Notes under the pieces: model-generated
Seen by the model: the letters and a program-made list of their open reading frames with translations, nothing else
Database searches by the model: none
What the model was told of the DNA's origin: nothing
Shown here: positions 3,987-37,920 of the stretch, piece by piece
Position numbering within the stretch: the first letter of the stretch is position 1
Layout of the letters: every line of letters starts with the position of its first letter
Origin: Oikopleura dioica
Lineage: Eukaryota > Animalia > Chordata
Assembly (NCBI GenBank): GCA_907165135.1
Contig: OU015567.1
Location: 6,262,001 to 6,326,000, forward strand
DNA length: 64,000 nt
Direction: 5' to 3'
Made by a program: the position numbers and the translations under genes

Positions 3987-4148
3987 TTCTAGGGCAAAAT
4001 AAGTTGATTCAGGGGGAACTACTGTAATTGAAACTGAATTGATTTCAGAAATCGGCAGAAGAATCAGCAGCTACGAGAATAAATAATCAAGAAAATTAAT
4101 AGAAAATCGCGAGAAAAAAGGTCGAAAACTGTTTACAGTTTCGCAGAG

Positions 4149-5008: not shown

Positions 5009-5096
5009 TTTTGTTCTGACAGTCTGAGAACTCAATGATAAGAAAATATGAATCTATTTGTTTATTGAATGAAGTTCAGAATAAATAAATTGAAAT

Positions 5097-5572
5097 TTAT
5101 GCAAGAGGAAAGCCAGTAGCTTGGCTCCATTTCTTCCACTCGACTTCGCCCCAGCTCTCGTTCCACTCTTTCCAGCCGCCTAAAATATCAGTTCTCTTCC
5201 TTGATTTCTGTCGATTACTTCACCTGTGTAATTATAACCATTTTGCGAGTTGAAGAAGGTCTCCCACAAATGAGCAGCGCGATGGGATCTCCTCCCACTC
5301 ATGCAGTAGAAAACAACTTTTTGGTCATCTTTAGGTTTTGGGAAATCAAAGAGCAATTCGAAGTTTTTGTCATTTAGGCCCTCCAAATCTGGGAACTCGC
5401 CAAGGGCGATGTGATTCCAATTAGCGGCTGGAATGGTGCCACCTTTGACCTCGTTGATGTCGCGCACGTCAATGACGACAACATTAGGGTCGACGGAAAG
5501 CTTCACGAATTCCGCCTTGTCGATATTTGTCAACGATCGACGGATTAATGCGGGTCTTACTGCTCTTAGCAT
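5097..5572 (-). CDS. Single-domain rhodanese/thiosulfate sulfurtransferase (TSTD-like) with probable mitochondrial presequence
   Basis: IDVR..E, FYCMSGRRS active-site loop and NYTGGWKEW after one intron; Arg-rich N-terminus MLRAVRPALIRRSL. Confidence 0.85.
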
Positions 5573-5755
5573 GCTCTGAACAAAGACAACAATTATATTT
5601 TTTGTTTTTTAAATAATTTATTAAAATTCTTAAAAGCTTGAACTTTCGGACTCGCGTGCAGCTGGCAATGTAAATGTTTGAGTATCCCGTGAACGGGTGA
5701 AAGCGATTGAAAAATAAAATATTCTAGTTGTTTTAGTGGCAGGAAAGACAGCTTC

Positions 5756-7660: not shown

Positions 7661-7831
7661 TGTTGATTCCGAATTACGCCAGTCTGAGAATCCAGAGATT
7701 GAAAACTTCGAAAAATTATTTAAAAGAAGGAAGAAAAATAGATTTCAGTAGAAAAAATAGATCAATAAAAAGAAAGGCTTGGAGGTTGGTGATTTTCGGA
7801 AGATAGAAAAGTTCGGTTTCGCTTGTTTGAG

Positions 7832-9180: not shown

Positions 9181-9445
9181 TTTCTGATAAAAAAATACAC
9201 ATGAAAGCTTGTTTTTGTATATATTTTTAGCGATATTTTCTGTTCGATTTCATTGGGATCAGAATTCATTCAAATTTTGCAGAGTGAAATATTATTCTTT
9301 CGAGCGATATTATCATGAAATAGCTTTAAAACACAACTTGAGTGTGTATTTTTAGAAAGGGCAGTAAAGAAGGAAAATCAGCTCGGAGCATTTTTTTGCA
9401 ATAAATAGCTCGACGAGACTGCAGATGGGGAACGAAATATTAAAA

Positions 9446-12400
9446 TTATTTCTTTTCTTCTTCATCCTCTGGAGAGTAGGCCGGACTAGCGGGGCTATAA
9501 GCCGGGCTAGATGGACTGAAAAGAATGGTAAATATTTGATGGTCGGCAGCTAAAAGTTTACCTGTACGCGGGAGAAGTCGGGCTATAACTTGGACTAGCA
9601 GGAGAATAGTTACTAGGTGAAGTAGGGGAGTAGCCGGATGGCGAAGCAGGGCTTTTGAAAATAGTAAGAAAGAGAGCTTAAAATTTTTGAAAACCTGTAT
9701 TGCGGACTGCTTGGTGAGTAATTAGGTGATGTTGGCGAGTAACTGGGACTGGCCGGTGAATAGGCGGGGCTTGAAGGACTGAATAGAAATTGATAGGAAG
9801 AAAAATTATGTAATTACGAACCTGTAATTGGGACTAGAGGGGGAGTAGGTTGGCGAAGTCGGTGAGTAAGCCTTCGATCCAGGAGTTCCTCCATCGCCGG
9901 GAGTGTATTTTGGTGAAGCGGGTGAATATGATGGCGAGGAGGGGCTGAAAAAGATAGAATACAGATAGACAAGGATGGCAGTGATACCTGTAGGTCGGGC
10001 TGTACTTGGGACTCGACGGGGTGTATGCTGGTGAAGAGGGGGAATACGAAGGCGATGTGGGGCTAAAAATTGGTAGGAAAGTACAAAATAGGGATAATCT
10101 AACCTGTAACTTGGTGACGTAGGGCTGTAATTCGGACTTGTCGGTGAGTAAGAGGGACTTGTCGGCGAATACGACGGCGATGTTGGCGAGTAGCTCGGCG
10201 AAGTTGGACTAGGGAAACGATTAAAGACGAGTTCTGAGATTGAAGTTTTACCTGTAGCTCGGGCTCGTGGGAGAGTAGCTCGGCGACGTCGGGCTATAAG
10301 ATGGCGATGTTGGCGAATAGCTCGGTGAGGTCGGCGAGTAACTGGGCGAAGTCGGAGAATAACTTGGCGAAGTCGGACTGTACGACGGACTGGTGGGACT
10401 GTAGCTCGGAGAAGTCGGACTATAGCTTGGTGAAGTGGGGCTATAGCTTGGCGATGTTGGTGAATAACTTGGAGACGTCGGGCTGTAAGATGGACTGGTT
10501 GGGCTGTAACTCGGAGATGTAGGCGAGTAGCTCGGTGATGTCGGCGAATAACCTGGCCCATCCGGTGAGTAGTTCGGCGAATATCCAGGAGACGCGCCAG
10601 CAGGACTCTGAGGCTGGTAATGCGGACTCTGTGGAATATCTCCGTGCCCGGGAGAGGGCATGAATGGTGATCGAGGCGACATCGCGCCAGGAGAAGCTCC
10701 GGGATAGTTGGGAGTGTAACCGGGCGAGAAGCTGACGTCTTCGCTCTGCGCGGGCGAGAACATACCACCAGGAGTAGCACCACCACGGGGAGTGTACGGC
10801 GTCCATCCAACACCAGAAGGCGTCGCACTTCCATCTGCCCACGGCATCGAAGGAGTAAACGAGCCGGAAGGAGACATTGCTCCGCCAAACATACCGCCCA
10901 TGAAGTTGCCACCGCCATTGCCAGGAACTTCCATCGCATCTTTACATTTTTCAACGTCGAGGACAAGCTGGAAGCAACCAGTTCCACCAGGAATTTGCTG
11001 CCCGAGCATGATGTTTTCAGAAACACCAGTAAGTGGGTCTACTTCTGCAGCAGCCGCAGCAGTCATTAAAATATCGACAGTTTCTTCAAAAGAGCATCGC
11101 ATGAGAGCACCAACGTCTTGTCGATTAACACCGTGTCGAGTAATAGCCATCAAGTGACCGCGCGAGGTCATGACATCGCACAACATAGACATGTGTCTGT
11201 AGTTGACATAAGAACCATCGAAAGAGATGACGTTCGTGATTTCTCGCTCGAGACATTTTCGGACAGCTTCAACACCAAGAATTTCGAAGCACTCGCAAAT
11301 ATCGTTAGAGCTCGTTCTAACAGTATCAATATCTCGCTGAGACAAAACTTTCATTAGCGCCGTTCCGTCAGTTTCAAGGATCCAGTCTTGCTGAGAAGCG
11401 AACTCGCCCTCTTTGTTGATGAAGATTTTCTTTTTCTCTTCTTCCTTTGGCAAGTTCATGTATACACGAGAAATGGATTCAATGCCCTGAAGAGTCATGT
11501 CGGACAAGATATTCGCCTCGATGTATCTCAAGAAGGTGTCGTCTTCCATCTTGTCTGCAGCTTCATCTTCGTCTTCAGCATCTTTTTGCTCGTTGTTCAT
11601 TATTCTGACTCGCAAGACCAGCTAAAAGTACGAATTTAACACTTATCTCGAGAAAGAAACTTTACCTTATCGGCGTTATCATCGTTGAAAATACAGTTGA
11701 GATCATCGCCAAATCCATGGTTGATCTTCTCTGAGATCTGTTCCATTGTCAACTTTTTGTCTGTCATCTTCTTGCGATCGAGCTCAATTCGAAGGAGCCA
11801 GGGAGAAATTCTACTGACATCGAAGTCGGGCATTTCGTAGTAAACTGAGACGAAATCCTGATCTTCTTCAATGACGGAGTTCATCGGATGCGGATCGTAG
11901 AAAATGGCCGTGTTCGCAGTGACGGTTTTCATTGTCGTGTGTTCAAGTCGGCAAAGGACATCTTTGCACATTTCCGCGTCACGCGCATGCTCGCCGAGGA
12001 GGAAGATGGTGACTGAAGGCGTCTTTGGCTTCTTGGTGATGTTGATCAACTCGTTGAGACGAGGGACACCAAGGGTGACGTTCTTCGCGGACACACCAGC
12101 ATAATGGAAAGTGTTCAAGGTCATCTGAGTGGCCGGTTCTCCCAAACTCTGGGCAGCAAGAGCACCAATCATTTCTCCTGGATGCGTGATGGCAGCGTTG
12201 AATTTTGACTCGATTTCACCAATGATGTAGTCGAATGCTTGTGAATTCAGGTAATACTCTTCAATGACACGCTTGGAGCACATGGTCGAGCGCATGTGAA
12301 TGTTGAACAACATAGTAGCGTTGTTCTGAGCTTCGATTGAGAGTGGATCAGTTCCGGACACTACGATAAGACGCTTTGTGAGCTCTTGGACATCCTCGAC

Positions 12401-15400
12401 GATCTTGATTGGGTCTAAGTCAGATTTAGTCTGCTTGGTGAGACTGTAGATTTTCTGAGCGTTGATGATCATGCGCTGCATGTTACAAGGTAGCGCGACT
12501 CGTGTTCGACCACGAGGGAAGATATTTCGCACTGTCTGTCGATCGATACAGAGCTGGTCAAACTCCTCGTCAACTTTGTTGTGGATTTCCGGGTTTGACT
12601 GAATTTCACGGACGACGTCTTCCTGGAGGCGTTTTCGAAGCGTCTTGTCGTTGGTATAGTCGAATCGGAACTTCTTTTCGAACATTCGATCAGAGAGCTT
12701 GATCGTGGACAAGTTCTGGAACTCGACGTGCTCACCGGCGAGACCGTCCTCACCGTATCGGAACTGGATAATGTTGTTGTTGGAAATACGGACTGTTCCG
12801 TCGTATCTGACAACTGCAGACTCCATAGCTTTGACCAGACGACGCTGGATGTAACCAGTTTCTGCAGTTTTGACGGCCGTATCGATCAAACCTTCTCGAC
12901 CTCCCATAGCGTGGAAGAAGAACTCAGTGGGAGTCAAACCGGCAAGGTAGGAGTTCTCGACGAAACCCTTCGATTCGGGTGAGTAATCATCCTTCAAGAA
13001 ATGTGGAAGGGTTCGATGCTCAAAGCCGAAAGGAATTCGCTTTCCTGAAACGTTCTGCTGACCGACGACAGCAATAATCTGCGAAATGTTAATCTTGGAT
13101 CCCTTTGAGCCAGCGTTGACCATGACTTTGAAACTGTTGAATTCGGACAGCGATTTTTGGGCGCAAGAACCAGTCTTGTCACGAGCGTCGTTGAGGATTC
13201 GATTGACCTTGTTTTCGAAGGTAGATCGAAGGGTGTTACCGGGAGTGGGGACGAGCTGATCATTGTGAGCTTGTTCGATGACGTCAAGCACTTCGGCCTT
13301 GGATTTTCGAATTTGCGCCTGGATTTCTTTGTATGTCTGTGCATCAGCAATTGTGTCTCCGATACCGATCGAGTGGCCCTCGATGAGCAGCCAATTGTTG
13401 ATAATTCGCTGGACGTCGCCAAAGAATCGTTTTGTGATTTCAGGGCCCTTTTCGTTGAAAATGACGTGAATGAGCGATCCAGACGATGCACCAAGCGTTT
13501 TCTTACAAACAATGCCCATCACGTGAACACCGTTGACGACTTCAACTCGCGTATCTCCAACTGAGATAAATTTGAATGGACCTTTGTCCTCGTCGTCCGG
13601 ATGCGTTGAGTGATGTCGAGTACAGTTGACTCCTTCTGGCACCATCATCGTGAAGAGCTGTTTTCCTGTCCAGAGGGGTCGTGGCTTGAGAATAGCTGGA
13701 ATAGGGACTCGTCCATCCCACATGGTCTTGAAGAGAACCAAGTTCATGAAATCGGATTTTTCAATGAAAGCATCACGCTTGGTCATCTTTCGCACAGCAG
13801 TTAGAGTATCCTGGACAATACCCATGACAGGTCGGTTACTTTGAGGAGTGACAACGAGTCGGGGGACAAGCGCGAGCTGGAGAATTTCAGCTCTCGTTTC
13901 CATCGACTGAGGAACGTGCAGATTCATTTCGTCTCCGTCAAAATCGGCGTTGTAGGGAGTAGTGACGGACAAGTTCAAACGGAAGGTCGACCAGGGAAGG
14001 ACTTTGACCAAGTGACCCATCATAGACATTTTATGCAGCGTCGGCTGTCGGTTGAAGATAATGACATCGTTGTCGCGGATGTGTCGCTCGACTTTGTAGC
14101 CGATTTGAAGATGCAGATCGGAGGGCTTTGGATGATAACGAAGATCAATACGCTCTCCAGTGTCTCGGATGATGTATTTGGCTCCGGGAAACTTGTTGCA
14201 GCCACGCTCAACAAGACGCTGAAGATGGTCGATGTTGAAAGGGGTCACAATTTCTGGATAGGTCAAGTTGCTGGCGATGGAACGCGGCACACCGACTTGA
14301 TTGATGTTCAAGTTAGGATCTCCTGTAATGACAGTACGCGCGGAGAAATCAACTCGCTTTCCCATCAAGTTTCCTCGAACTCGACCTTCTTTGGCTTTCA
14401 ATCTTTCTGAAATCGACTTGAGCGGTCGGCCTGACTTTTGCATCGATCGTGGCAAACCAGGGAGAGTGTTGTCCATCATTGTCGCCACGTGGAATTGCAA
14501 TTCGAGAACACCTTGTTCAAGAATATGCGCCGCAGCACCGGAGGCCTCGTTTCGGCGGAGCTCCGTATTGACTTTGATGATGTCTGAGTATTTGTGCGTC
14601 ACATCATCCTGGCATCGCAAGCCAGAGCCACCCATGACGACGGATGGTCGAACACAAAGAGGAGCAACGGGCAGGACAGAAATAATCATCCACTCTGGTC
14701 GGGCATACTTGCAGTCCATTCCCAACATTTCAATTTCCTCGTCAGAGATGTTTTTGAAGACTTCAAGGACGCGTTCCGCCGTTACTGTGATTTTCTTCTC
14801 TTGGGTGTCTTCGTTGAGCTTCTTCCATTCAGCCGTGAGCTGGATTCCTGTTCGCCGGTAAATAGGCTGGTGACGACCACAACCGCCATGAGAGGGCTTT
14901 TTGTTCTCATCTGTTGGTTCTCCGTTGTCTTTTTTCTCTGAGAAATCTCCGTCGATTTCGTCACCGCCTTCACAAATGTTCTTTCCTTTGCAGAGATCGT
15001 ACACTCCATCAAGTCGTTTTCTAGGAGTTCCCGCTGTTCTCGCGAGAATGCTTTGCATCTTCGGGTTGTTCTTGTCCACGAGCACCTTTGAGCAGTAGAA
15101 ACAGATGCATCGAAGGATTCGAAGCGTTTTGTTGAAGAAACCAACGTGGAAGACTGGTTTCGCGAGCTCAATATGGCCGAAATGACCAGGGCAATCGTTC
15201 ATGTTTCCAGCGCATGTTTGACAGCGCGAGAATCTGTCGCTTACTCCCTTATTCCGTTTTTAGAGAGGAATTCATATGTTGCTTTTTACCTGTCGGGGAT
15301 CCATGATACCACCGAGCTTTGGCTTTCCATTCTCAGTCGATTCTGGATACATGATGCCGTCTGAGTGCGGCGGCACTGTAACCGACATTCGTTTGATTTC

Positions 15401-15469
15401 ATCCGGGCTCAGAATCCCAAACTGAACCCGTTTGATTTTTCGGAGCGTTACGGAAGACTCGCTCTGCAT
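9446..15469 (-). CDS. POLR2A: RNA polymerase II largest subunit (RPB1)
   Basis: CPGHFGH, NADFDGD and trigger-loop TQMTLNTFH motifs and a YSPTSPS CTD; introns at 15248-15289, 11622-11665 and six within the CTD; ends [13 protein letters not shown] at 9446. Confidence 0.99.
9480..10550 (-). repeat. Coding heptad repeats of the Pol II CTD (~36 units) split by six introns
   Basis: 14 uninterrupted YSPTSPS units at 10550-10257, then degenerate units in exons of 105, 75, 123, 84 and 90 nt plus a terminal exon. Confidence 0.95.
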
Positions 15470-15683
15470 TTTTCGTCGACCTCAATTTTCAGTCTGGAAA
15501 ATAGTGAAACATTAAAAAGGGGTTGGGTTTATTTTTGGTTTGTCAAGTGTATTGGGTTGTTAAATGGCAGTGGGATAACTGAATAGAAAAAAAAACTGTC
15601 GTGACATGGGAATGGCTAGTGAGTATGAATTTGAAATTATTCCTAGGTTGTGAACTAAACGGGAAAAAAGAAAAGAAGCCGCC

Positions 15684-20612: not shown

Positions 20613-22045
20613 TCAGTCAACTTGCATCCCATCTTCATCCGAGCCAGGTTCTGGCGGGTCTTCTTCGAATTGAAGCGTTGTAGAAAACTTGGCAAAGCAG
20701 CCACTTGAGCAACAAAACTCTAGTTGAGGAATCACGAAGTTGTTTGGCATTGGCGCCACTGCATCCGTATTTGAGGTGTATCGACGGACATCGTAGCCGG
20801 AAAGGAACATGAACTTTCGGTCGGAAAGGGGTTCGCCGCAGGGGCAAAAGCGAATTGATTCCAGAAGAGAATTTAGGCGAGTGGGGACTTTTTGAGGGTT
20901 GATAGGGAGCTTGTGCTTGAGAATCTTAGCAGCGGCGACCTGAATTCATAATTGAAATTCTGTTACAGATAAGGGTATCACTTTATTATTTCAACAGACC
21001 TGCGCTAATGTCTTCGCAACTGGAATCTTGCTTGTATCCACCTTGAATTTGTGCAGCATTGAAAAAGGGTTGTCCGACAAATCTAGGCTTTGAAAACGAT
21101 GAAATCTCGCAAACTCAGTGAAGAAAATTTTATTCTCTTTCGCCGATAAGATCGTAAGGGAGTTGGGGAGTCGAGCTGGAAGACGTCTGATTTGATTCTT
21201 GTCGATGATGAGGCTTGAAAGCTTCGGAAGAGTGCATAAAGAAGGGAGAGAAGTGAGTTGATTTGACGAAAGATCAAGTTTTTGAAGAGAATCGGCGATG
21301 GGAGAAGATTTCAGCGGTCGAAAAGCTCGCTCGTCCAACTTGTTGTCTGATAAAATAAGCGCCTTGAGACGAAGTTGAAAGAGTTTCGGATTCAGCGTTG
21401 ATAGATTATTCCTTGTCATGTCGAGAACCGTCAAATGACGGAGTTTAAAAAGACGCAGGTCGATTTGCTTCATTCCCAGTCCGTGACAGCGAAATTCTTC
21501 TAGTTCTGCAGGGATTCCGGCTTTTTTAGAAAGCTTGGTTTTGTAATCGTCGCGGGAGAGGATGTTGATCTTGGTCGTTTTTCCAATTTTGATAGGCTTG
21601 TTTGTTGCTGAAGCGAGGACTCCGACTCCGACCAGTGATTTTCCTTCAAACGAAGTTTTCATCGCGGACAGGAGCTTTTTCAACTGCCCTGGATCGGCTT
21701 TGGAAATCATAATGTTCACTAAAACGCGTTAATTCTCCATAGAATGAATCTGATGATACCTGAAGGCTCTTTAAATTCAATCGTCAGCTTTCCCTCATGA
21801 ACGAATTTCGCTAAACATCTGTTGAGATTCGCTTTGAGCGCAAATTTTTCGCCCTTTCCCGATTTCGACTTTTCCGTGTGCACCACCAAATAGCCCGCAC
21901 CATCTTTTTCGAACAAATTTACCGATGCCTTCGCTGGTTTCTTTGTCTAACCAAAAAGTTAGTTCAGGGTCACCTTCATCGTATTTACCGCGTGATTTCC
22001 ACGCTCGTTCCGGAGTGATTGGGCAGCGTGGCACAGAATTCTCAT
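20613..22045 (-). CDS. LRR1: Leucine-rich repeat protein 1 (CUL2 substrate receptor)
   Basis: N-terminal KFVHEGKLTIEFKEP, LRR block LKALILSDNKL/LQKLDLSSNQL, C-terminal CPCG and FCCSSGC zinc-binding motifs; four exons. Confidence 0.88.
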
Positions 22046-22375: not shown

Positions 22376-23869
22376 TTACGGAAATACTGTTGAGAACTTA
22401 CCTATCTTTATGAGGGGCTTAGTGACGGTAACACCATTTATTTCTTTACTGAGAGAAGGATACTCTTGATCGGGGTCGTCGAGATGCTTTAACAGGCGTT
22501 TTACGCAAAATCCCTTGCGCATCTTCTTGTCATAATCGTCTTGGACTAACATGTTATGATAGATGCCAATTTCATGCGTAGTATCCAAGAAGCAAACAAC
22601 TTCATAGCCTTCCTTTTCCGACAAAAATCCAAAGGCGTAAAAGCCATGACGTTCCTCATTGTCGTCATCAAGGTCATGGCCGCTTTCATCGCTGTAGTCG
22701 TCATCGCTGGTCTCTTCATCGTTGTTGTCTTCAATTTTCTCCAGGACCTTCCAGATCGTCAGTCCGAGGCGTTCTTCGACCATGCCAAATTTCAGATGTC
22801 CTGAAATATCCGGAAGATCGTAACGGATCACTCTTCTCTTTGAAAGAATAATATGAAAAGCGATACATCCATTGACGGTTAAGTTCCTTTGCTCAAGATT
22901 GAGGTCGATCCGTAGAATCAAGTTATCATGGTCCATTAAGAGCAGCCGTGGTCTTATGAAGAATTTTGGTTCCATAATCGTTTCTTTCCAAAGAACGTCG
23001 ATCGACGATTTACCGATCCGAACGCATTCAATAAAAACGGTGATCGGATCTGGTTGGTAGATGATTGGAAAGAGAACACTTTCCCGTAGCTCCCCATTTT
23101 GATACAGATCGCTCTTGTATCGAGGGGATTCTTTTGTGTCCTCAGAATCAATATACATTATGACACCTTCTCTTTTGATGGTTCTTGCCGGCTCGCTTGG
23201 TTCCAGTAGATTGAAGACATAATAGGTCTGCTCCCTTCCACGTAGACCATCATGATCTTGGACGATGAGAAATGGTTCGAAGAGAAAGTAAGCGGAAACT
23301 GAGTCAAGGGATCTTGGAAGCTTCAACGGTTGCAAACTGATTCCACTTGATCGTAAAATCTTATAAACATACAAATAATTTCCAAGCGTTGCTCCTTCGT
23401 CTTCAATGCCATTGATACTTGAATTACTGACGATCCAATTACTCCCAAGTTCCACGACCCTACTCGATTCAAAAACGGCCTTTGGAACAGCGGATTCTTT
23501 CTTGATCTCTTCTCGGTGGGAAAAAATTCTAGCAATATCGGACAAACTGTTCGGCTCTCGATCGTATTTTGCCCGGAAGTCGTCTTTCAGTAGATTGATC
23601 ACATAATCGTCGTTAGCCATCAATTTGAGAATCCTCATACAATCACCCGCTTCGATGAGATGGTCCAATGGTCCGTATTCGTCTGAATCGTCCATTGGAA
23701 GAAGTTGATTCTTCGCCGAGGCAAAAACCTTTCCATCAGCTCTCTCAAACACAAGCTTGGCAAGTTGGTTTCCTTTGGGATGATCTGCTATCTCCTTGAG
23801 TATCTTCTCTCTCTTCGGTGTATTTTCTTTCTTTTCAAACAGCTCGTACAGCTTTTTTATTCGATTCAT
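22376..23869 (-). CDS. Orphan ~500-aa intronless family, copy 1 (class A)
   Basis: Long ORF; ATG (MNRIKK) directly after a TTTCAG acceptor; paralogous to copies at 24764, 27829 and 29638. Confidence 0.85.
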   Translation of the reverse strand: MNRIKKLYELFEKKENTPKREKILKEIADHPKGNQLAKLVFERADGKVFASAKNQLLPMDDSDEYGPLDHLIEAGDCMRILKLMANDDYVINLLKDDFRAKYDREPNSLSDIARIFSHREEIKKESAVPKAVFESSRVVELGSNWIVSNSSINGIEDEGATLGNYLYVYKILRSSGISLQPLKLPRSLDSVSAYFLFEPFLIVQDHDGLRGREQTYYVFNLLEPSEPARTIKREGVIMYIDSEDTKESPRYKSDLYQNGELRESVLFPIIYQPDPITVFIECVRIGKSSIDVLWKETIMEPKFFIRPRLLLMDHDNLILRIDLNLEQRNLTVNGCIAFHIILSKRRVIRYDLPDISGHLKFGMVEERLGLTIWKVLEKIEDNNDEETSDDDYSDESGHDLDDDNEERHGFYAFGFLSEKEGYEVVCFLDTTHEIGIYHNMLVQDDYDKKMRKGFCVKRLLKHLDDPDQEYPSLSKEINGVTVTKPLIKIGKFSTVFP

Positions 23870-24138
23870 TCTGAAAAGCTTCAATTCAAGACTCTTGAAC
23901 CAAGATGAAAACTATTCCTCGTCATTATGGTCGATTCAATTATTAAATTTTAATTGATGTACCTTGAAGTAAAGAAGTTAAAGGAATCTGAGATCTTGAA
24001 CGAGTGAAAATAACTTGGTAAAAATTGATTCTAGAAATAGTAAAATATTACCATTGATTGATAATTATCATTTGTCATTTTCAGTACTGATAAGAAATTT
24101 ATACAGGGCAATGGACAGTAATAAATAGAGAATGATAA

Positions 24139-24374
24139 GTTGTCTGATAAAATAAGTGCCTTGAGACGGAGTTGAAAGAGCTTCGGATTCAGAGTTGATA
24201 AATTATTCCTTGTCATGTCCAGAAGCGTCAGATGACGGAGTTTAAAAAGACGCAGGTCGATTTGCTTCATTCCCAGTCCGTGACAGCGAAATTCTGTGTC
24301 GGTAAAATTATATTTACCGCGTGGTTTCCACGCTCGTTCCGGAGGGATTGGGCAGCATGGCACAGAATTCTCAT
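24139..24374 (-). pseudogene. LRR1 5' fragment, internally deleted and truncated
   Basis: Near-identical to LRR1 exon 1 and to the FRCHGLGMKQIDL..LILSDN stretch; the intervening exons are deleted; truncated after TCAGACAAC. Confidence 0.85.
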
Positions 24375-27015: not shown

Positions 27016-27430
27016 GTTGTCTGATAAAATAAGTGCCTTGAGACGGAGTTGAAAGAGCTTCGGATTCAGCTTTGATAAATTATTCCTTGTCATGTCCAGA
27101 ACTGTCAAATGACGGAGTTTAAAAAGACGCAGGTCGATTTGCTTCATTCCCAGTCCGTGACAGCGAAATTCTTCCAGTTCTGCGGGGTTTCCGGTTTTTT
27201 TTCGAAAGCTTGGTTTTGTAATCGTCGCGGGAGAGGATGTTGATCTTGGTCGTTTTTCTAATTTTGATAGGCTTGTTTGTTGCTGAAGCGAGGACTCCGA
27301 CTCCAACCAGGGATTGAGCGCAAATTTTTCGCCGTTTCCCGATTTCGACTTTTCCGTGTGCACCACCAAGCAGCCCGCGCCATCTTTTTCGAACAAATTA
27401 ACCGACGCCTTCGCTGGTTTCTTCGTCGAA
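27016..27430 (-). pseudogene. Second LRR1 5' fragment, with a different internal deletion
   Basis: FEKDG..EKFAL is fused out of frame to exon-3 sequence; same 3' truncation point as the fragment at 24139. Confidence 0.85.
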
Positions 27431-27828: not shown

Positions 27829-29334
27829 CTAAAGGACATGAATAGACGAAATAATGGTGAGTTTACCAATCTGAACGAAGGGTTTACTAACGGTGACGCC
27901 GTTTATTTCTTTGGTCAGGGAAGGGAGCTTTTGATCCATGTCGACTAGCTGTCTTATCAGGCGTCTTGGGCAATATCTCCTGCGCTCTCTGTTGTCATTT
28001 TGTACGATCATGTCTCGGCGGATCAGAATATCCTGATTCTTTGAAAGCTTGATGAAGCAAACAACTTCGAACTTATTCTTTTCTGAAAAGACGCCAAAGG
28101 TCACTAAGCCAGGACGTTCAAAGGTATCATTTTCTTCATCGAGCTCGTCTCTACTACTGTAGTCTACATCGCTGTCGTCTTCATCACTGCTGTCTTCATG
28201 ATTATTCAAGGGATTCCAAATCGTCAGTCCGAGGCGTCCGTTGACGATTCCAAAATCAAGACTTCCCGAAATATTCGGAAGATCAATTCGAATCACTTTT
28301 CTTTTTGAAAGAATAATATGATAACCGAGGTATCCATGAGTGATTGCATTTTCATCGTAGTTCTCTTCGATATTTAACATCAAGTTGTCATTGTTCAATA
28401 GAGTCACGGATCTGATCAGCTGATCCACATCGTATTCTTCAGGTAGAATAATCGTTTCTTTCCAGAGGATATCGATCGATGATGTACCGATTCGAGCACA
28501 TTCGATGCAAACGCTGACTTCATCTGGATTGTAGATGATTGGAAAGAGAACACTTTCGCGAAGCTCTCCATTGAGACGCAAATCGCTGCCGTAATTACAT
28601 GGAATCGAGATATCTACGTTAAAAGCAGGCATCATTCGACCGTTTCTTCTGATGGTTCTTGGAGGATCGCTTGGTTGCAGTAAATTTAAGACTCTGTAGG
28701 TTCGTTCTCTTCCATCGAAAATAATAAGGAAGGGTTCCAGGAGAAATCTTTTCATTGTGTTGCGGATGAAAGGTCTTGGAATCTCCACTCTCTCCAGAAG
28801 AATTCCATTTCCTCGCAAAATTTTGTAGACAAATACGCCTGCGTTTCCCTGTAGCTCGTCTTCAACGCCATTTATAACAGCACGAGTTATGATCCAGTTA
28901 CTCCCGATTTTCGCTATCCCCTCGGTTTCAAAAACGGCTCTCCGACTCGCTATTGAGGATTCTTTCTCGATTATTTCTCGTTCAGCGAAAATTCTGGCGA
29001 TATCGGACAAGCTGCTCGGCTCACAACCGTATTTGACCCGGAAATCCTCCTTCAGTAGATTGACGACGTAATCCTCCTTAGCCTTCAATTTGAGAATCCT
29101 CATACAATCTCGCGCTTCGAGGAGATGGTCTAAAGGTCCGTATTCGTCTACATCGTCCATTGGAAGAAGTTGATTTTTCGCCGAGGCAAAAACGTTTCCA
29201 TCAGCTCTCTCAAATACAAGCTGGGAAAGGAGGTTTCCTTTAGGATGCTCTGCTATCTCCTTGAGTATCTTCTCTCTCTTCGGCGTATTTTCTTTCTTTT
29301 CATACAGCTCGTACAGCTTTTTTATTCGATTCAT
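27829..29334 (-). CDS. Orphan family copy 3 (class B)
   Basis: Intact 501-aa ORF; C-terminal two-thirds most like copy 2. Confidence 0.88.
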   Translation of the reverse strand: MNRIKKLYELYEKKENTPKREKILKEIAEHPKGNLLSQLVFERADGNVFASAKNQLLPMDDVDEYGPLDHLLEARDCMRILKLKAKEDYVVNLLKEDFRVKYGCEPSSLSDIARIFAEREIIEKESSIASRRAVFETEGIAKIGSNWIITRAVINGVEDELQGNAGVFVYKILRGNGILLERVEIPRPFIRNTMKRFLLEPFLIIFDGRERTYRVLNLLQPSDPPRTIRRNGRMMPAFNVDISIPCNYGSDLRLNGELRESVLFPIIYNPDEVSVCIECARIGTSSIDILWKETIILPEEYDVDQLIRSVTLLNNDNLMLNIEENYDENAITHGYLGYHIILSKRKVIRIDLPNISGSLDFGIVNGRLGLTIWNPLNNHEDSSDEDDSDVDYSSRDELDEENDTFERPGLVTFGVFSEKNKFEVVCFIKLSKNQDILIRRDMIVQNDNRERRRYCPRRLIRQLVDMDQKLPSLTKEINGVTVSKPFVQIGKLTIISSIHVL

Positions 29335-29637
29335 TCTGAAAAACTTCCGTTGAAGAGTCTTAAAGTCAAAAATTATGAAGATTTATGGCGGGAAAATATG
29401 AAAATAAAATGATTGTGTTGAAAAAATACAGAGTGACCTTGTCATTCAACCTCAGAGTCATTCCTTGTGCAGTACAAAACTATCGTTAAATGAATATTTC
29501 GACTTTCGAAGAGTGCATTCCATTTCGTTTTTTATAGGTGACGCATGCGATTTTGGACCGGTCCATCACATGATATTCTTTCTTCGCTTTATTCTTCGAG
29601 AATTCTCCAAGAAAGAGACTTTCTAAAGTGAAATAAA

Positions 29638-31137
29638 TTACGGAAGTACTGTTGAGAACTTACCTATCTTTATGAAGGGCTTTGTGACGGTTACACCATT
29701 TATTTCTTTACTGAGACAAGGATACTCTTGATCGGGGTCGTCGAGATGCTTTAACAGGCGTTTTACGCAAAATCCCTTGCGCATCTTCTTGTCATATTCG
29801 TCTTGGATCAACATATTATGATAGATGCCAAGTTCATGCGCAGTATCCAAGAAGCAAACAACTTCATAGCTTTCCTTTTCCGACAAAAATCCAAAGGCAT
29901 AATAGCCACGATCTTGCTCGTTGTCGTCATCAAAGCCATGGCCGCTTTCGTCGCTATAGTCGTCAACGCTGGTCTCTTCATCGTTGTTGTCTTCAATTTT
30001 CTCTAGGGCCTTCCAGATCGTCAGTCCGAGGCGTTTTTCGACCATGCCAAATTTCAGATATCCTGAAATATCCGGAAGATCGTAACAGATCACTTTTCTT
30101 TTCGAAAGAATAATATGATAAGCGATACATCCATTGACGATCATGTTTCTTTCTTCAATACTGAGGTCGATCCGTAACATCAAGTTATCATGGTCTAGTA
30201 AGTGCAGCCGCGGTCTCATGAAGAATTCTGTTTCCATAATCGTTTCTTTCCAAAGAACCTCGATCGAGGATTTACTGATCCGAACGCATTCAACACAAAT
30301 TTGATAGGTGGTTGGATCTGGTTGGTAGATGATTGGAAAGAGAACACTTTCCCGTAGCTCCCCATTGAAGTACAGATCGCTGTCGTATCGAGGGCATTCT
30401 TTTGTGTCCCCAGCATCAATATACATTATGTCACCTTCCCTTTTGATGGTTCTTGCCGGCTCGCTTGGTTCCAGTAGATTAAAGACATAATAGGTCTGCT
30501 CCATTCCACGTAGACCACCATGATCTAGTACAATCAGAAATGGCTCAAAGAGAAAGTAAGCGGACACTGATTCAAAGGATCTGGGAAGCTTCAACGGTTG
30601 GAGACTGATTCCACTTGATCGTAAAATCTTATAAACATAGAAATGATTCCCAAGTGTTCCTCCTTCGTCTTCTATGCCATTGATTCTTGAATTACTAATG
30701 ATCCAGTTACTCCCAAGTTCCACGACCCTACTCGTTTCAAAAACGGCCTTTGGAACAGCGGATTCTTTCTTGATCTCTTCTCGGTGGGAAAGAATTCTAG
30801 CAATATCGGACAAACTGCTCGGCTCTCGATTGTATTTTGCCCGGAAGTCTTCTTTCAGTAGATTGACGACGTAATCCTCCTTAGCCATCAATTTGAGAAT
30901 CCTCATACAATAGCCCGCTTCGAGGAGATGGTCCAATGGTCCGTATTCGTCTGCATCGTCCATTGGAAGAAGCTGATTTTTCGCCGAGGCAAAAACGTTT
31001 CCATCAGCTCTCTCAAATACAAGCTGGGAAAGGAGGTTTCCTTTAGGATGCTCTGCTATCTCCTTGAGTACCTTCTCTCTCTTCGGCGTATTTTCTTTCT
31101 TTTCAAACAGCTCGTACAGCTTTTTTATTCGATTCAT
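29638..31137 (-). CDS. Orphan family copy 4 (class A)
   Basis: Intact 499-aa ORF; C-terminal two-thirds and 3' flank most like copy 1. Confidence 0.88.
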   Translation of the reverse strand: MNRIKKLYELFEKKENTPKREKVLKEIAEHPKGNLLSQLVFERADGNVFASAKNQLLPMDDADEYGPLDHLLEAGYCMRILKLMAKEDYVVNLLKEDFRAKYNREPSSLSDIARILSHREEIKKESAVPKAVFETSRVVELGSNWIISNSRINGIEDEGGTLGNHFYVYKILRSSGISLQPLKLPRSFESVSAYFLFEPFLIVLDHGGLRGMEQTYYVFNLLEPSEPARTIKREGDIMYIDAGDTKECPRYDSDLYFNGELRESVLFPIIYQPDPTTYQICVECVRISKSSIEVLWKETIMETEFFMRPRLHLLDHDNLMLRIDLSIEERNMIVNGCIAYHIILSKRKVICYDLPDISGYLKFGMVEKRLGLTIWKALEKIEDNNDEETSVDDYSDESGHGFDDDNEQDRGYYAFGFLSEKESYEVVCFLDTAHELGIYHNMLIQDEYDKKMRKGFCVKRLLKHLDDPDQEYPCLSKEINGVTVTKPFIKIGKFSTVLP

Positions 31138-31657
31138 TCTGAAAAACTTTAACTCAAGACTTTTGAAGTCGAAAATTTAAGCTTGATCCTAACATTACTG
31201 TCATGGAAATGGGCTTATTGTGATTGGCATAATAAGGCACGACCATTTTTTCAAAGCAAAAACTATTCCTTATCATTATGGTCGAGTTAATAATTATAAT
31301 ATATTTTAATCGATGTACCTGCGGGCTTGAAGAAGATAAAACTAAAGAATAAAGTGATATAAAAGGTGAAAATAAACTGATTCTAGAAATAGTAACCGTA
31401 AAGCATCGCACTAGAATTTAAATTTGATTGATAATTATCAATTTGAAAATTTATACAGGGCAATTGACAGTAATAAATAGAGAATGATAAGCTTAATTTT
31501 CTCTGGTGACGCTAAAATGTCGCAATTCTTCTCGAAAAGGAAATCCCTCTTTCATAACCAATCAGCGCGCCGTAAAGATTCGAAAAAATTACAGCGAGAA
31601 AAATCACTATTTCGGCCTTGCAGAGAAAGAAAACCATCCAAAAAGAAAAGAAACGAG

Positions 31658-34600
31658 ATGCTGGACGCATTGCTGATCGCAAGAGGAGCAAAAAAGCTCG
31701 CCCCAGAAGTCGGGAAAGCGATTTCTAAGAAAATTGCCCCTTCAAAATGCCCGTTAGAAATTCAGCCAGAGAAAATTCAAGCTATCGCTGGACCGTTTCT
31801 GAAATCTTACTCTGCTCAAGGTTAACTTCTTTGAAAAAACCTGTGTGGAAAACCTGAGTCAACGTCTAGAGACGTTACGCGGCTTTCAAGACCCTGACTC
31901 AGGATTCTACACAGGTTTTTTCCAAGCTCAGTTTATTAATCTACATTTCAGGAAGCTACACTGATTTGTACTTCGACATCCGAAAAAGTCTTCAAGCTCA
32001 AAATCTTCGCACACTCAAAAACGCCATTTTTCCACAACTCCTTCCTTGCTTCTTTCAAAAGAGGATCTTCTCAAAGCCCAAAAGTCCAAATCCGAACGAA
32101 TCCGAAACAAAGTCGAAGCTCGAAAATCCGCTCTTCAATCTGAGGCCCGCCAGAGACACGTTCCTTCAGGTGAATCGAGTGAATTTCCAGCTGTGCTTAC
32201 TGTCCTCTTCTGATTGTCAAAATAAACGCTCAAGAAACTCATTTTCTTCTTCTAGGTCGTCTTGAAAGATCTGTCGCTTTCGGAGCAGGAGCAATAGGCC
32301 TCGCCGCAAACGTTCTCAAAAATCGAATCACCTCTCAGGAGCCAGCTAGCGATCCGATTCTACGAACACTTGGGCTGACGGAAAATGATGTTTCTGAGCT
32401 TGTCGGCTTGCTTTGCAAAATGCGCGGAGCAGCGTTGAAGCTTGGACAGTTTTTGTCGATTCAAGATGATAATTTTATTTCGCCAGAATTACAGGTAAGC
32501 TTCAAATGAAAAATATGCAAACCTGAGTCAGGATTTTTATGACTCGTCGCGGCTTCCTTGATCCTGACTCAGGTATTTTATACAGGTTTCCGATCCTAGA
32601 ATTGACCGTTTTCGAATTTCAGGTCATCTTCGAGCGAGTGCGCCAAACAGCCGATTACATGCCTGAAAAGCAACTTCGAAAACAACTAGACACAGAACTA
32701 CCCGAGAGAGGCGATTTTCTGGCAGTTAGATTTTCTGGCAGTTAGACTTTCTGGCAAAGGCGATTTTCTGGCACTGCCAGAAAATCTAATATGCCAGAAA
32801 ATCTAATTTCAGAAAATCGCCTCTTTAATTTTGAATCTACAGTTAATGTTCCTGGAAGGTAAAAAATGGAGAGAAGAAAAGCTCGGAATTCATCTTCTGA
32901 TTCTTCTGAGGATGATTTCAAAAACTATTTGTGGGGCCGGAAATCGTAAAAACTGCAAGTGCAGTTTTCTTAAGCTCGTCAAGACGAGTCGAATGATGGG
33001 TCTAACTCTTGATAATTCTAAGGATTGACCGGTTTAACGACTGGTTACCGGAAAATCGTTGTCACGTTGTCACCGTTTTTGTTCTAGAAGTGATAATAGA
33101 CTAATGTTTGACACCAGAAATTGTTTCTTATAGTCAGTTCTCCTGCAGGGTAAAAGATGAAGGTTGTATCAATACTGAAGAGAGTTATCACTAAGAACAG
33201 TACATTTTACTAAAATTTTGTTGTTGCTGCACGTTCCTAATTTCTTGTACCATTTTCGCCAAAAATAGTATTTTAGTGATAACTCTCTTCAGAGAATTGA
33301 TTAAACCTTCATCTTTTACCCTGCAGGAGAACTGACTATAAGAGACAATTTCCGGTGTCAAACATTAGTCTATTATCACTTCTAGAACAAAAACGGCCGG
33401 TGACAACGTATTTTCCGGTAATCAGCCGGTAAACCGGTCAATCCTTAGAATTATCAGGAGTTAGACCCATCATTCGACTCGTCTTGACGAGCTTAAGAAA
33501 ACTGCACTTGCAGTTTTTTTACGATTTCCGGCCCCACAAATAGTTTTTTGAAATCATCCTCAAAAGAATCAGAAGATGAATTCCGAGCTTTTCTTCTCTC
33601 CGTTTTTTACCTTCCAGGATCATTAACTGTAGATTCAAAATTAAAGAGGCGATTTTCTGGCAGTTAGATTTTCTGGCATATTAGATTTTCTGGCAGTGCC
33701 AGAAAATCGCCTTTGCCAGAAAGTCTAACTGCCAGAAAATCTAACTGCCAGAAAATCGCCTCTCTCGAACTACCCGGCTGGGAAACCCGCTTTGCCGAAT
33801 TCGATCTTCAACCCTTTGCTGCCGCTTCTATTGGCCAAGTTCATCGAGCCAAGACTTTGGACGGAAAAGATGTTGCCGTCAAGGTCCAATACCCCGGAGT
33901 AGCTCAATCGTTTAATTCTGACATTGATAACTTGGTGATGGTGCTGAGGCCATTCATGGCGCGTTTGCCCGAGCAGTTGTTTTTACCGAAGATCATAGAT
34001 TTTGCGAGAAGAGAGCTGACGAGAGAATGCGATTACGAAAGAGAACTTCAAGCGAATCTTAGAATGAAAGAATACTTCAAGGATGATGAAGAATTCTTCG
34101 TCCCATCCGTCTACCCCGAATTATCAAGCGCCGCAGTCCTGACATCTGATTTCGTCGAAGGGGAAGTGATAGATCGACTAGACATCGATGCCCTCCCACA
34201 AGAAGAACGCGACTTTGTCGGCAAATCGCTCCTGAAACTTTGTATGAATGAAGTTTTTGTTCATCGATTCATGCAGACGGATCCGAACTTTGCTAACTTC
34301 TTGTACCAGCCAGGGTCCTTCAAGCTAAATCTTATCGACATGGGAGCGTGTGTTGGTAAGTTTATAGAACCTTAATCGTCTGGTAGAAGAAGCTCTTTTA
34401 GACTATCCAGCTAAATTTACAACGCCGTATATGCAACTTGTTTATGGAGCAGTAACGCATGACCGTGAACTGGTCTATGAAAAGTCAGTAGAATTGGGCT
34501 TTCTGACAGGAGCTGAGAGCCAAAAATGAAAGACGCTCATGTTGATTCCGTCATGATTGTTGGCGAACCTTACCAGGTACGGTCAAGAACTCTTTCCTGA

Positions 34601-34857
34601 AATCAACCTCAATCTAGCCCGATCCTTACGATTTCCATCAAAACGACATGACCGCAAAGATCGCTGAAAAAGTGCCGACAATGTTCGCCGAGCGCCTCAC
34701 CCCGCCGCCAGAAGAAACTTACACTCTTCACCGAAAACTCTCCGGCGCTTTCTTAATGTGTGGGAAAATTAAAGCCAAAGTATCCTGTAGAAATGACTTT
34801 ATCGAAACTCTTAGTAGGGCGGGTTATCCCGACCTTGCAGCTAGCCTAAAAGAATAA
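31658..34857 (+). CDS. COQ8: COQ8/ADCK3-4 atypical kinase, interrupted by a foldback element
   Basis: LCKMRGAALKLGQ (KxGQ), PFAAASIGQVHRA, VAVKVQYPGVA, MQTDPNFANF and PPPEETYTLHRKLSG motifs. Needs +1 A at 32017-21 and at 34522-26, plus removal of 32704-33766. Confidence 0.93.
31838..31917. repeat. Short intronic copy of the CCTGAGTCAGG palindromic MITE-like family
   Basis: AACCTGTGTGGAAAACCTGAGTCA ... TGACTCAGGATTCTACACAGGTT inverted arms in COQ8 intron 1. Confidence 0.75.
32510..32588. repeat. Short intronic copy of the same palindromic family
   Basis: ACCTGAGTCAGGAT ... ATCCTGACTCAGGT inverted arms in a COQ8 intron. Confidence 0.7.
32704..33766. mobile_element. Foldback/Mutator-like non-autonomous element, 1063 bp, 9-bp TSD
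   Basis: TSD GAACTACCC at 32695-32703 and 33767-33775; ~490-bp inverted arms starting GAGAGAGGCGATTTTCTGGCA; 78-bp spacer at 33195-33272; subterminal ATTTTCTGGCA repeats; no ORF. Confidence 0.95.
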
Positions 34858-36107
34858 AAGATACCATTATCATTCCATAAATATCTAATTGCCTTTTTGT
34901 ATGAGAAAAAGTATTCAATCTGCTTTTTTGACTTGTGTCAAGCTCGTTAGGGCGGCTAGAGAAGAGAAGTGAGTGCGGCTCGTGGGAAGTCAAGGACCAT
35001 AAATTAATGTATTCGAGCAGTTTCCGACGCTTTTTTTGGAAAAGAAAAGAAGAGTTCTCACGCTTCTGAAGTATAAAAAACCGCACTTCGAGCCTCTAAC
35101 TTTCCCTTCCCATGAGGAGGAGGGCGACCCTTAATTGTTCCTAATGCAGGGACTTAATAACTCTGAAAGCAAATGACACATGTGACATGTCGAACATGGG
35201 AATTAAAAACAATCAATTATCATTTGAAAAGCTTTTTAATAGAAGAAGATTTGAATCCTGTAGTTTGTCCCTGCAAAGAGCTGTGGGAAGATCGCGTGGT
35301 CAGATAATTCTGCAAGACAAATAGTAATTTACTATCTATTGAAGCTTATACCCATAAAATGCGTGCCCATTTTTCCGGAGAGATAAATCTTTCCGGGTCT
35401 CACTTTCACTCTCACCCACTTTTTGTATGACAGATACTGTAATTGCTCGTTTTTACGTAGACATATAAAGATGATCATTAAGGACAATTTTCAAAAGAGC
35501 AAAAGAGCCATTTGATTGCGAGTTACGAAGTTAAACGCCATGGGAAACGAGATTAACCAGAAAAAAAACGGCAACAAAAGTTAATAAGAGCGATCTTTTT
35601 CCCATAAAAATCACACTTGAACAGACCAATCTAAATTTCCTGGAAAGCCGCGGATCATAAAACACCGCGGTTATTTTTTTAAAAGCGTAATTACGAATTT
35701 ATTCTCATTTGATTCATGAAACAGGAATTCGCGTTTGCCAAAATGCTGATGATGAGAAACATGACTGGGTGCTTATTCCGGTTTCCCAGGCGCGGCTGGA
35801 GTCACACCAAGGCGCGCTCCACCACCAAAAAGGCGATCAGCATCATTCAAACGCAAAACCGCTTAATCCCTCACTATCGCTCACTATCCCGGTGCAGGGG
35901 CACCTTTTCCCATCCCACCAGTCACCGCCCGGTCACCTGGCGCTCCATTTCATGGAATTACTGCTTTTACTTCTTATCAAGAATATTTTTTCTCATGCGC
36001 TTGCTTTAAAAATATCAAAAGACCATTTCAAAATGAACGAATTCACGGAGGAAGTCCTCAACTGGGTTCAAAACATGAGTCAGGAAAACCAAGCCAGGGC
36101 ACTGTAA

Positions 36108-36245
36108 CGGCTTTGATTAAAAGCCGCGTAGCGGCTTTTCTAAAAACGAAGCCGCGAAGCGGCTTCGCCATTATAAGGATTCAAATCCACTACCTACATA
36201 TTGTAGCGAAGCCGCTTTAAATCCATCGCTTTCTGGACCCTGACT
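36108..36245. repeat. Partial copy of the palindromic family (AAGCCGC-N3-GCGGCTT modules)
   Basis: AAAAGCCGCGTAGCGGCTTTT and GAAGCCGCGAAGCGGCTTCGCCA, then GACCCTGACTC. Confidence 0.65.
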
Positions 36246-36625
36246 CGTGATTTTCTACACAGGCCAGCTCCTACTGTTCCAGAATCGGGGAGCAGTCCTT
36301 CTCCACAAATAACCTAATTTCTTTACTGTCTGAAAATATGCCTCTGAAAATTGGTCTGTGGGAGCGTCGAGCTGCCCTTTAGGTTGACCAGTTGATTGTT
36401 CTGCCGGCGTGGACCGGATGATCCTTTTCCCAGGCAGATTAGCTCGCTCCTGAGTTGATCCGCCGCCGCAAGTTTCGAGATTTATACTCGCTCTTGAGCA
36501 TGGGAACTCAAATAACGAATTCGCGCACCGAATAAAGGCCATAAACTTCGCTTAGAGCACGGAACATTCCAATTCAAAATGAGTTATGAAAATACAGTAT
36601 TTTTCGCTTCTTTCTTTTGAAATAT

Positions 36626-37222
36626 TTATTTATATAAAGTTTGAGGTGTTTGAAATTTTGAGGAGGATTTGACTGTTTTAAAAAAAGGTGAAGCAGCAAA
36701 AAATGGTGTGAGTTGAATTTTTAAACGCGTTTTAATCCGAGTCGTCAAAGTCGCTGGGAACGGGGAGGGTTCGCGGGAGAGACCGAGGAGCTCCATCAGG
36801 TTCTGGATCATTTGCGGGTGCCGGCTCGCGTAGTGGAAGATGGTCCAGCCACCGTGTGAGGCTACGTGCGCGGAGACACCGGTTGATATCAGCGCCTGAA
36901 GAAAAGTGAGTCAAAATTGTTTTTTCCTTTGATAAAATAAGGAGTTCTTAGTGTATCAAGACTTTGGTAACCTTTTCCTGAGAACAGATGTTCTTGTGCA
37001 TTCTAAGTGCGTACCAGCAGGACTGTATAAGGTAAAATATTTATATAAATAATTATTTTTAACAATTAAGGTTCTTACCTTTACAAGTTCAAAATCGTTC
37101 AAAATCACCGCCGCGTGGAGCCCATTCCATCCCCTTTGATCGAAAACGTCAAAATCCACGTTTCGCCGAAACTCGCAATCCTGAAGAATCTGCTTTTGAA
37201 CTTCCTGAAGAACTTGCTCCAT
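36626..37222 (-). CDS. Small ankyrin-repeat protein (ends uncertain)
   Basis: FDQRGWNGLHAAVILNDFELVK spliced (GT-AG) to ALISTGVSAHVASHGGWTIFHYASRHPQMIQNLME gives two ankyrin-like repeats. Confidence 0.65.
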
Positions 37223-37649
37223 TCTCTCGGGCGAATGAGATCTTCTGCGGCTTTGTTTCTTGCGTTTCTGCAGGTGAACTGCGTCCTTCTCTGCTCGATT
37301 CTCAGTGGAGAAACTGGCGGGGTCTCCATTTTCGATGAGTTTCTTTCTCTGGCGGTTGAAAACTGGTTCAAAAACGAGCAAAAGAGTGTGTAGCGTTGAG
37401 CGTTTTTCACGAACACCAGCTTCCCAGAGAGACTCCCGAGATGACTATTAGCCCAATTGAGTTTTTCTGAATTTAAAATAGAAACTTGGACGATAAAGGC
37501 AGCGTCGCGCGGGGTGGTCAGCGCCGCTCGTTGCGCGCGACGCCGCTGAGGGAGCGTCCAACAGCGCCAAATTCAGAAAGAACACCTGCTCAGATGAACG
37601 CAGATGATCCTCCTCCTTCCCGTGCATTTGTAAGACCCAAAACCCTCTC

Positions 37650-37920
37650 CAAACCTGAGTCAGGGTCCTGGAAAAGCAGCGTAGCGGCTTTTCTTTAAAA
37701 ATTAGCCGCAGAGCGGCTCTGAGCTGGGCTCAGCAACTTGAGTCAGGTTTTGAAGAGTTTATATCAAAAGCCGCGTAGCGGCTTCGCCAATATTTTAAAA
37801 TAGAGAAAATTGATTGGTTTGCGAAGCCGCTTTGCGGCTTCGTTAAAAAGCCGCTACGCGGCTTTTCATATAAGCTCTTCAAAACTTGACTCAGGTTTTC
37901 TATACAGGTTGCCGAGCTCA
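37650..37920. repeat. Palindromic MITE-like family copy
   Basis: CCTGAGTCAGGGTCC, TTGAGTCAGG and TTGACTCAGGTTTTCTATACAGGTTGCCGAGC, with internal AAGCCGC modules. Confidence 0.75.

Follow-up and report, generated by a model that had tools for sequence, protein, structure and literature searches.

A polymorphic foldback-type transposon in a COQ8 coding exon of Oikopleura dioica and candidate splice sites in its terminal repeats

Results

In the stretch of DNA analyzed here (called the window: 64,000 nucleotides of Oikopleura dioica, positions 6,262,001 to 6,326,000 of contig OU015567.1), a coding exon of COQ8 is split by a palindromic DNA transposon. COQ8 is a gene of ubiquinone synthesis. The first-pass annotation, which was made from the letters of the window, had described a palindrome of 1063 bp that interrupts this exon and is flanked by a 9-nt duplication, and the sequence together with a repeat scan bore this out. 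It had further proposed that the element supplies its own splice sites and can be removed from the transcript as an intron. We find that such sites are indeed present in the element but favor, somewhat cautiously, the view that the allele has mostly or wholly lost its function and is sheltered by an intact one. The features at the locus are as follows, in positions of the window.

31658-34857, plus strand: COQ8 gene (g5683), assigned by homology
31821-31952, 32170-32255, 32496-32622, 34356-34401 and 34578-34617, plus strand: COQ8 introns, verified by homology
32623-32703, plus strand: 5' part of the interrupted exon (27 residues), conserved in all homologues and skipped by the public gene model
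32695-32703, unstranded: left copy of the target-site duplication (TSD), GAACTACCC, COQ8 codons E-L-P
32704-33766, unstranded: non-autonomous foldback (palindromic) DNA transposon, 1063 bp, with self-complementary arms
32704-32826, unstranded: left terminal module, 16-17-nt subrepeats with TTTCTGGCA as a local palindrome, carrying the proposed donor
32725-32732, plus strand: proposed 5' splice site, GCA/GTTAGATT, with a second copy, GTTAGACT, at 32741
33644-33766, unstranded: right terminal module, which mirrors the left one and carries CTAAC motifs and the proposed acceptor
33725-33751, plus strand: candidate branch-like motif, CTAAC at 33725-29, followed by the proposed 3' splice site, CTGCCAG, with its AG at 33750-51
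33767-33775, unstranded: right copy of the TSD, GAACTACCC; a contig of DNA run X1 (see below) begins exactly at 33767
33776-34355, plus strand: 3' part of the interrupted exon, ABC1 kinase-like domain, by Pfam and homology

The host locus corresponds to OKI2018_I69.chr2.g5683 (GCA_907165135.1, OU015567.1:6290658-6299857), which is identical base for base to 28658-37857 of the window, and the element accordingly lies at about 6,294,704-6,295,766 of chr2 (OU015567.1) of the Okinawan reference individual. The exon part downstream of the element matched the Pfam family ABC1 (PF03109) at 1.8e-55, and a protein search with it returned a 90%-identical protein, of which the best named matches were COQ8A/COQ8B of tunicates and vertebrates; P0153 (the public gene model at this locus, g5683.t1) and P0152 (from Bergen O. 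dioica) were also among them. Judged from its sequence, the host gene can be assigned as an ortholog of COQ8/ADCK3 in the ABC1 atypical kinase family. COQ8 is single-copy, and the element sits in its exon 4.

For comparison, we used a DNA run labeled as this species (X1, as Logan contigs), the Bergen protein P0152, and three genomic contigs of another O. dioica lineage (L002-L004, ~77% nucleotide identity). The exonic differences listed between the window and the X1 contigs, 29 in number, are all synonymous and at third codon positions, which points to strong purifying selection on COQ8 in this population and makes the insertion a recent event on a constrained gene; an old pseudogene allele was rejected on the same count. 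The first-pass annotation had considered the rest of the gene to be conserved, and this holds only in part: compared with the Bergen protein and L002, the reading frame of the assembled allele is broken twice by a net -1, at ~32004-32010 and at 34522-34527. The latter is in an A-run, where the window reads CAAAA-ATG as compared with CAAAAGATG in the other lineage; the X1 output covers this second site, where it is ambiguous, and not the first. Neighboring open reading frames (ORFs), namely four of ~500 amino acids and one with a 238-residue leucine-rich-repeat (LRR) match, are unbroken. The frame breaks in COQ8 are either residual Nanopore/assembly errors or real lesions.

The introns of this gene also deserve a separate remark. 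Introns 1 (31821-31952) and 3 (32496-32622) align over their full length with 80% mean column identity and share a palindromic insert of ~72 nt, AAACCTGAGTCA...CCTGACTCAGG...ACAGGTTT, which resembles a miniature inverted-repeat transposable element (MITE). Intron 3 minus this insert is about 55 nt, a usual size, and the intron is absent in L002-L004, in which ELQVIFERV is uninterrupted.

The arms of the element form a near-perfect palindrome over its whole length; in the repeat scan, the outer 104 nt of the arms are 100% complementary, and three inner blocks of 104-115 nt each are complementary at 95-97% with small indels between them. Among possible TSD lengths, 9 bp alone keeps the termini symmetrical. 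At each end, a 16-17-nt unit with TTTCTGGCA is repeated five to six times (families D1 and D2), in an arrangement that makes the terminal ~120 nt a palindrome in its own right, the left terminal module folding alone at -75 kcal/mol (z = -12.5 against shuffles). The whole element is predicted to fold as a single hairpin in RNA and in DNA, in RNA one of ~500 bp at -855 kcal/mol with both candidate splice sites buried in it, in agreement with the earlier caveat on a long hairpin (~490 bp). Coding capacity is confined to ORFs of at most 73 amino acids. With its palindrome of palindromes, its termini built of subrepeats, and its 9-bp TSD, the element would fit the Mutator/Foldback group of transposons.

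When the terminal hairpins (32719-32812 and 33647-33761) were compared with Rfam, matches to several microRNA-precursor models were obtained on both strands, the best of them reaching 41.8 bits where the gathering score is 100. Identity as microRNA precursors was rejected, the sub-threshold scores being a generic effect of perfect hairpins; the element termini, if transcribed, nonetheless share their shape with Drosha/Dicer substrates.

An allele without the element was found in X1, where one contig joins 32694 to 33767 and skips exactly 1072 bp, corresponding to the element plus one TSD copy; a second contig starts exactly at 33767, with the graph branching at the TSD. The depth of the empty-site contig is 57.8, as compared with 78-90 for single-copy contigs and 39-55 for heterozygous branches, so that the empty-site allele has about one-half to two-thirds of the depth of single-copy sequence nearby. 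Position 32664 is C on the empty-site contig (depth 57.8) and T, the letter of the window, at a depth of 54.9. The filled junction is presumably present in X1 as well. Because ~2% of the flank positions differ from the window at full depth, X1 is not the assembled animal. The empty-site allele thus indicates that the insertion is segregating and can be sheltered by an intact copy; the earlier caveat that the window might represent a heterozygous null allele is in line with these DNA data as far as a segregating allele with an intact alternative is concerned.

Deleting the element and one TSD copy from the window restores an uninterrupted ABC1 exon, and the exon is likewise uninterrupted (ELPGWETRF) in P0152 and in L002-L004. 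On this comparison of sequences, the uninterrupted COQ8 exon is the ancestral state and the insertion would be young.

Relatives of the element are abundant in X1. The depth of its k-mers ranges from 500 to 15,500 against ~80-90 for the flanks, i.e., up to ~170 times the flank depth, which is a rough guide only to copy number. A deletion derivative, in which 33054 is joined to 33518 with the central 463 bp swapped for 12 other letters, was found in the same run, and these two observations describe a family that is highly repeated and heterogeneous. Several X1 contigs part from the window copy at 32910 and 33558, which, together with the member with a replaced center, suggests that the foldback family is modular. 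Searches elsewhere were negative: no second copy was found in the 64-kb window, a metagenome scan with a 22-mer of the element terminus and a protein search with the longest ORF of the element gave zero matches, and neither the terminal sequence GAGAGAGGCG nor the 16-17-nt subrepeat had a match in the collections searched. A looser pattern of three subrepeats hit 120 loci, all of which were rejected as unrelated 15-nt tandem repeats by blastn. Foldback elements in Oikopleura go unmentioned in the literature that we searched. Taken together, the TSD, the depth, and the empty site confirm that a real, multicopy, and recently inserted DNA transposon of the foldback type occupies a constrained coding exon.

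We then consider the splice sites that had been proposed in the element. The GT at 32725-26 is preceded by GCA and belongs to an octamer, GTTAGATT, that was rightly noted to be identical to the donor of an RPB1 intron on the minus strand. This intron in the region for the carboxy-terminal domain of RPB1 starts with CAG/GTTAGATT at 10103, is 41 nt long, and ends in TTTTTAG at 10063, and its removal restores the YSPTSPS heptads; the donor of COQ8 intron 1, GTTAAC, is also of the GTTA type, and the candidate donor is therefore credible. On the other side, CTAAC occurs at 33725-29 and 33741-45, and the AG lies 23 nt past the first branch-like A. Splicing between the two sites would leave 21 + 15 = 36 nt of the element, stop-free in three frames, and with the 9-nt TSD a total of 45 nt, by which 15 amino acids are added in frame. 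The footprint and the TSD are multiples of three, and the outer 104 nt pair without a mismatch, so that splicing would give this outcome in any phase and in either orientation; the description of the donor, the acceptor, the footprint, and this symmetry in the first-pass annotation is accurate at the level of sequence.

The preservation of frame is, nonetheless, not beyond chance, since, of 22 GT x AG combinations within the terminal 130 nt, 4 leave a length divisible by three and ~7 would be expected; among these 22, only the outermost pair is stop-free in every frame. As a reference for splice sites, we relied on six introns verified by homology or by heptads, because a de novo matrix obtained by expectation maximization over ORF-joining GT-AG pairs was too noisy. 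The six introns end in TTTCAG, TTCTAG, TTTCAG, TTTTAG, ATCTAG, and TTTTTAG, and the proposed acceptor, CTGCCAG, is without a T-run. Very stable stems enclose both candidate sites, and the local 120-nt hairpin would already hide the donor ahead of transcription of the far arm. The candidate intron is 1027 nt long, and the median intron of O. dioica is 49 nt (PMC8008620). In a predicted structure, the insert of 15 amino acids would enter a three-residue link from a helix to a short helix/strand, which is predicted at a pLDDT (predicted local distance difference test score) of 98. This link has equal length across 40 diverse COQ8 homologues, except for a one-residue gap in the two appendicularian (Oikopleura-type) sequences, and is directly followed by an invariant Trp. 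The context of the site would thus lean against an efficient rescue by splicing.

The public model P0153 takes another course through this region. It joins the upstream donor at 32496 to the AG at 33750-51, so that the upstream intron, the exon piece, and the transposon become a single intron of 1256 nt; as a result, it lacks the conserved 27-residue piece at 32623-32703 and reads SPELQ directly into the sequence after the acceptor. The acceptor is therefore the one proposed in the first-pass annotation (33751), while the donor at 32725 is unused. P0153 also evades the frame breaks via two odd introns, at about 31985-32061 and about 34450-34520, and thereby loses conserved residues such as VTHDRELVYEKSVELGFLTGAESQ. 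The g5683 annotation was produced by AUGUSTUS with RNA-seq hints (PMC8008620), but P0153 is weak evidence for any real junction because of the other contortions in the model.

Three raw oligo-dT RNA runs (X11-X13) gave 2, 5, and 6 reads on 32100-34900, which are 90-95% alike to the window and are not near the junctions; from this degree of likeness, the runs come from a different cryptic lineage. None of the RNA contig runs listed contained the 597-nt exon stretch at 33776-34372. A search of the protein collection for COQ8 ORFs of transcript-derived or Okinawan origin returned only other-lineage proteins and the annotated model P0153.

Beside COQ8, contig L002 carries ORFs (Pfam PH_LRR1 and a faint LRR match) that match 20616-21922 of the window (minus strand) at 78-98%, with 86% for the 238-aa LRR ORF, and that partly match 23869-24294 and 27016-27402. 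The latter two are inside the tandem "orphan" genes of ~500 amino acids, which may hence be LRR1-type leucine-rich-repeat proteins.

Discussion

The window carries a recent and still-segregating insertion of a multicopy, non-autonomous foldback-type transposon in exon 4 of COQ8. As to its effect, we lean toward an allele that is mostly or wholly loss-of-function and that owes its persistence to its young age and recessivity, with the intact allele as a shelter. Reading of unspliced transcripts of the insertion allele would end at a stop 13 codons inside the element (ELPERGDFLAVRFSGS*), and an intact allele may provide shelter in a very heterozygous, outbreeding species; indeed, the heterozygosity of O. 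dioica is ~3.6% (PMC8008620). The GT, CTAAC, and AG motifs could be by-products of a subrepeat that contains GTTAG and is read on both strands, and the assembler may simply have happened to retain the insertion haplotype.

Several points weigh against a loss of function. The intact allele is known from samples other than the assembled individual, I69. The set of GT...CTAAC...AG is present at both ends of the element, and the frame would always be restored upon splicing; the octamer of the donor serves a real RPB1 intron 22 kb away. The spliceosome of O. dioica is unusually permissive, with 11-12% of introns being non-GT/AG (PMC8008620, PMC4122922), and in the related Fritillaria, MITE-like insertions are considered the source of most introns (PMC11282704). 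The reads of X11-X13, furthermore, are silent on splicing of the element either way.

Alternatively, the spliceosome might remove the element via its own termini (32725, CTAAC at 33725-29, and 33751), with 15 amino acids added to a COQ8 that still works, as an introner-like family would do. This was the proposal of the first-pass annotation, and we regard it as unlikely. What speaks for it is that the sites exist, that the 36-nt footprint is open in all frames with the duplicated ELP read in phase, that the self-complementary outer 104 nt offer identical signals in both orientations, and that both a bona fide RPB1 intron and COQ8 intron 1 vouch for the type of donor. AUGUSTUS with RNA-seq hints picked the same acceptor, and transposon-derived introns are known in appendicularians and many protists (PMC11282704, PMC9860276). 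The same public model, however, does without the proposed donor, skips a conserved exon piece, and contains two further odd introns, which makes it weak evidence. A T-run is missing from the acceptor, both sites lie within very stable stems, and pairs that keep the frame are no commoner than expected. The loop that receives the insertion is of fixed length, is predicted with high confidence, and precedes an invariant Trp, and no junction read is included in X11-X13. Also, because the allele is polymorphic and has an intact alternative, selection need not have tested it. By extension, it appears doubtful that the foldback family is a currently active chordate introner, with any exonic insertion, whatever its orientation and phase, being reduced by splicing to an invariable stop-free footprint of 36 nt and the 9-nt TSD.

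About as unlikely is a partial or aberrant rescue, in which other pairs of sites remove the element and a hypomorphic or non-functional protein is made at a reduced level. Three canonical GT-AG pairs that are in frame and stop-free are available. Among the candidates for such a rescue, 32496/33751 skips the exon piece and is exactly the public model P0153; 32741/33719 would add 93 nt; and a local mini-intron, 32725-32812, could use a strong TTTCAG (32807-32812) in the left terminal module. Tc1 of Caenorhabditis elegans is reportedly spliced from exons, typically via several cryptic pairs, according to Rushforth and Anderson in 1996. Splicing of exonic Ds1 in maize typically proceeds via several cryptic pairs as well (PMC5432752). 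Skipping of the exon piece, nonetheless, would drop 27 residues that are conserved in 40 of the 40 aligned homologues, including the invariant A215, M218, P219, and Q222.

An assembly artefact, by which Nanopore foldback reads or mis-assembly create the palindrome, is very improbable and was rejected: while the assembly is Nanopore-based with haplotigs purged from 99 Mb (PMC8008620) and two possible indel errors occur elsewhere in COQ8, the element is flanked by a perfect 9-bp TSD, its arms differ by 3-5% plus indels and hence are no read folded on itself, and the family is highly repeated in the independent run X1, in which the graph branches exactly at the TSD.

It is established in other organisms that transposons supply or co-opt splice sites and become introns. 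Such introns are known as introners in algae, stramenopiles, and dinoflagellates (PMC11282704, PMC9860276). The element in COQ8 resembles introners (Micromonas, Aureococcus, dinoflagellates, and others; Huff, Zilberman and Roy 2016; Gozashti et al. 2022, PMC9860276; review PMC11282704) in that it is non-autonomous, has terminal inverted repeats (TIRs) and a TSD, and is located in a coding exon; its sequence could also supply splice signals, and its splicing would mean a direct gain of an intron. Introners are, however, short and have thousands of spliced copies with proof from transcripts, whereas the COQ8 element is a full palindrome of 1 kb and a candidate only with regard to splicing. In addition, an introner as a rule brings one splice site itself and borrows the second from a TSD of 3-8 nt, but both candidate sites of the COQ8 element are within the TIRs, and, unlike introners, the element would leave 36 nt and the 9-nt TSD in the mRNA if it is spliced. 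As far as the work of Henriet et al. (2019) is related in PMC11282704 and PMC13326754, the MITE-derived non-canonical introns of Fritillaria borealis come from the same class of animals, with the marks of TIR and TSD and a permissive U2 spliceosome. According to the same accounts, the Fritillaria introns have gone to fixation, are short and mostly AG-AC/AG-AT, and their splicing is demonstrated, whereas the COQ8 element is a polymorphic GT-AG candidate of 1 kb.

Likeness to other systems is also evident. From the Ds work of Wessler, exonic Ds insertions are said to be removed by cryptic splicing. The maize elements Ds1/dSpm (for Ds1, PMC5432752) and Tc1 are like the COQ8 candidate in that the splice sites are in or near the termini, most of the element is removed, and a short footprint is left; their insertions result in leaky alleles, with the footprint in or out of frame. 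The splicing of Ds1/dSpm and Tc1 was shown by cDNA sequencing and gives variable and often out-of-frame footprints, while the outermost candidate pair of the COQ8 element would always be in frame. With the Foldback (FB) elements of Drosophila and with Mutator-like elements, the COQ8 element shares long inverted arms of short tandem subrepeats, a 9-bp TSD, the noncoding nature, and precise excision or empty sites; the likeness is structural, and the terminal GAGAGAGGCG and the subrepeat are without a match in the collections searched. The internally symmetrical stwintrons and sister introns of Hypoxylaceae fungi (PMC8469720) proliferate, have long terminal inverted repeats, and may form double-stranded intron RNA, all of which is reminiscent of the COQ8 element. 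Those elements (PMC8469720), nonetheless, have no TSD, DNA transposition is excluded for them, and their splicing is verified, in contrast to the clear TSD and the candidate splicing of the COQ8 element.

In conclusion, a foldback-type transposon segregates in a coding exon of COQ8 in O. dioica, and its significance depends on whether it is spliced. If it is unspliced, the insertion is an ordinary, recessive gene-breaking one and the reference haplotype carries disrupted alleles of essential genes; of practical value, it then flags the public model g5683 as faulty in skipping conserved residues. If the splicing is true, the element would be a new variation on transposon-derived introns in three respects: both sites are within a palindromic TIR, the GTTAG of the donor becomes the branch motif CTAAC when read on the opposite arm, and the footprint is fixed independently of phase and orientation. 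It would then represent a live, polymorphic gain of an intron in a chordate, driven by a DNA transposon with both splice sites of its own. Such a gain could be tracked through populations of a laboratory animal that completes its life cycle in two weeks, and would contribute to an explanation of the 76% of Oikopleura introns that are lineage-specific (PMC4122922).

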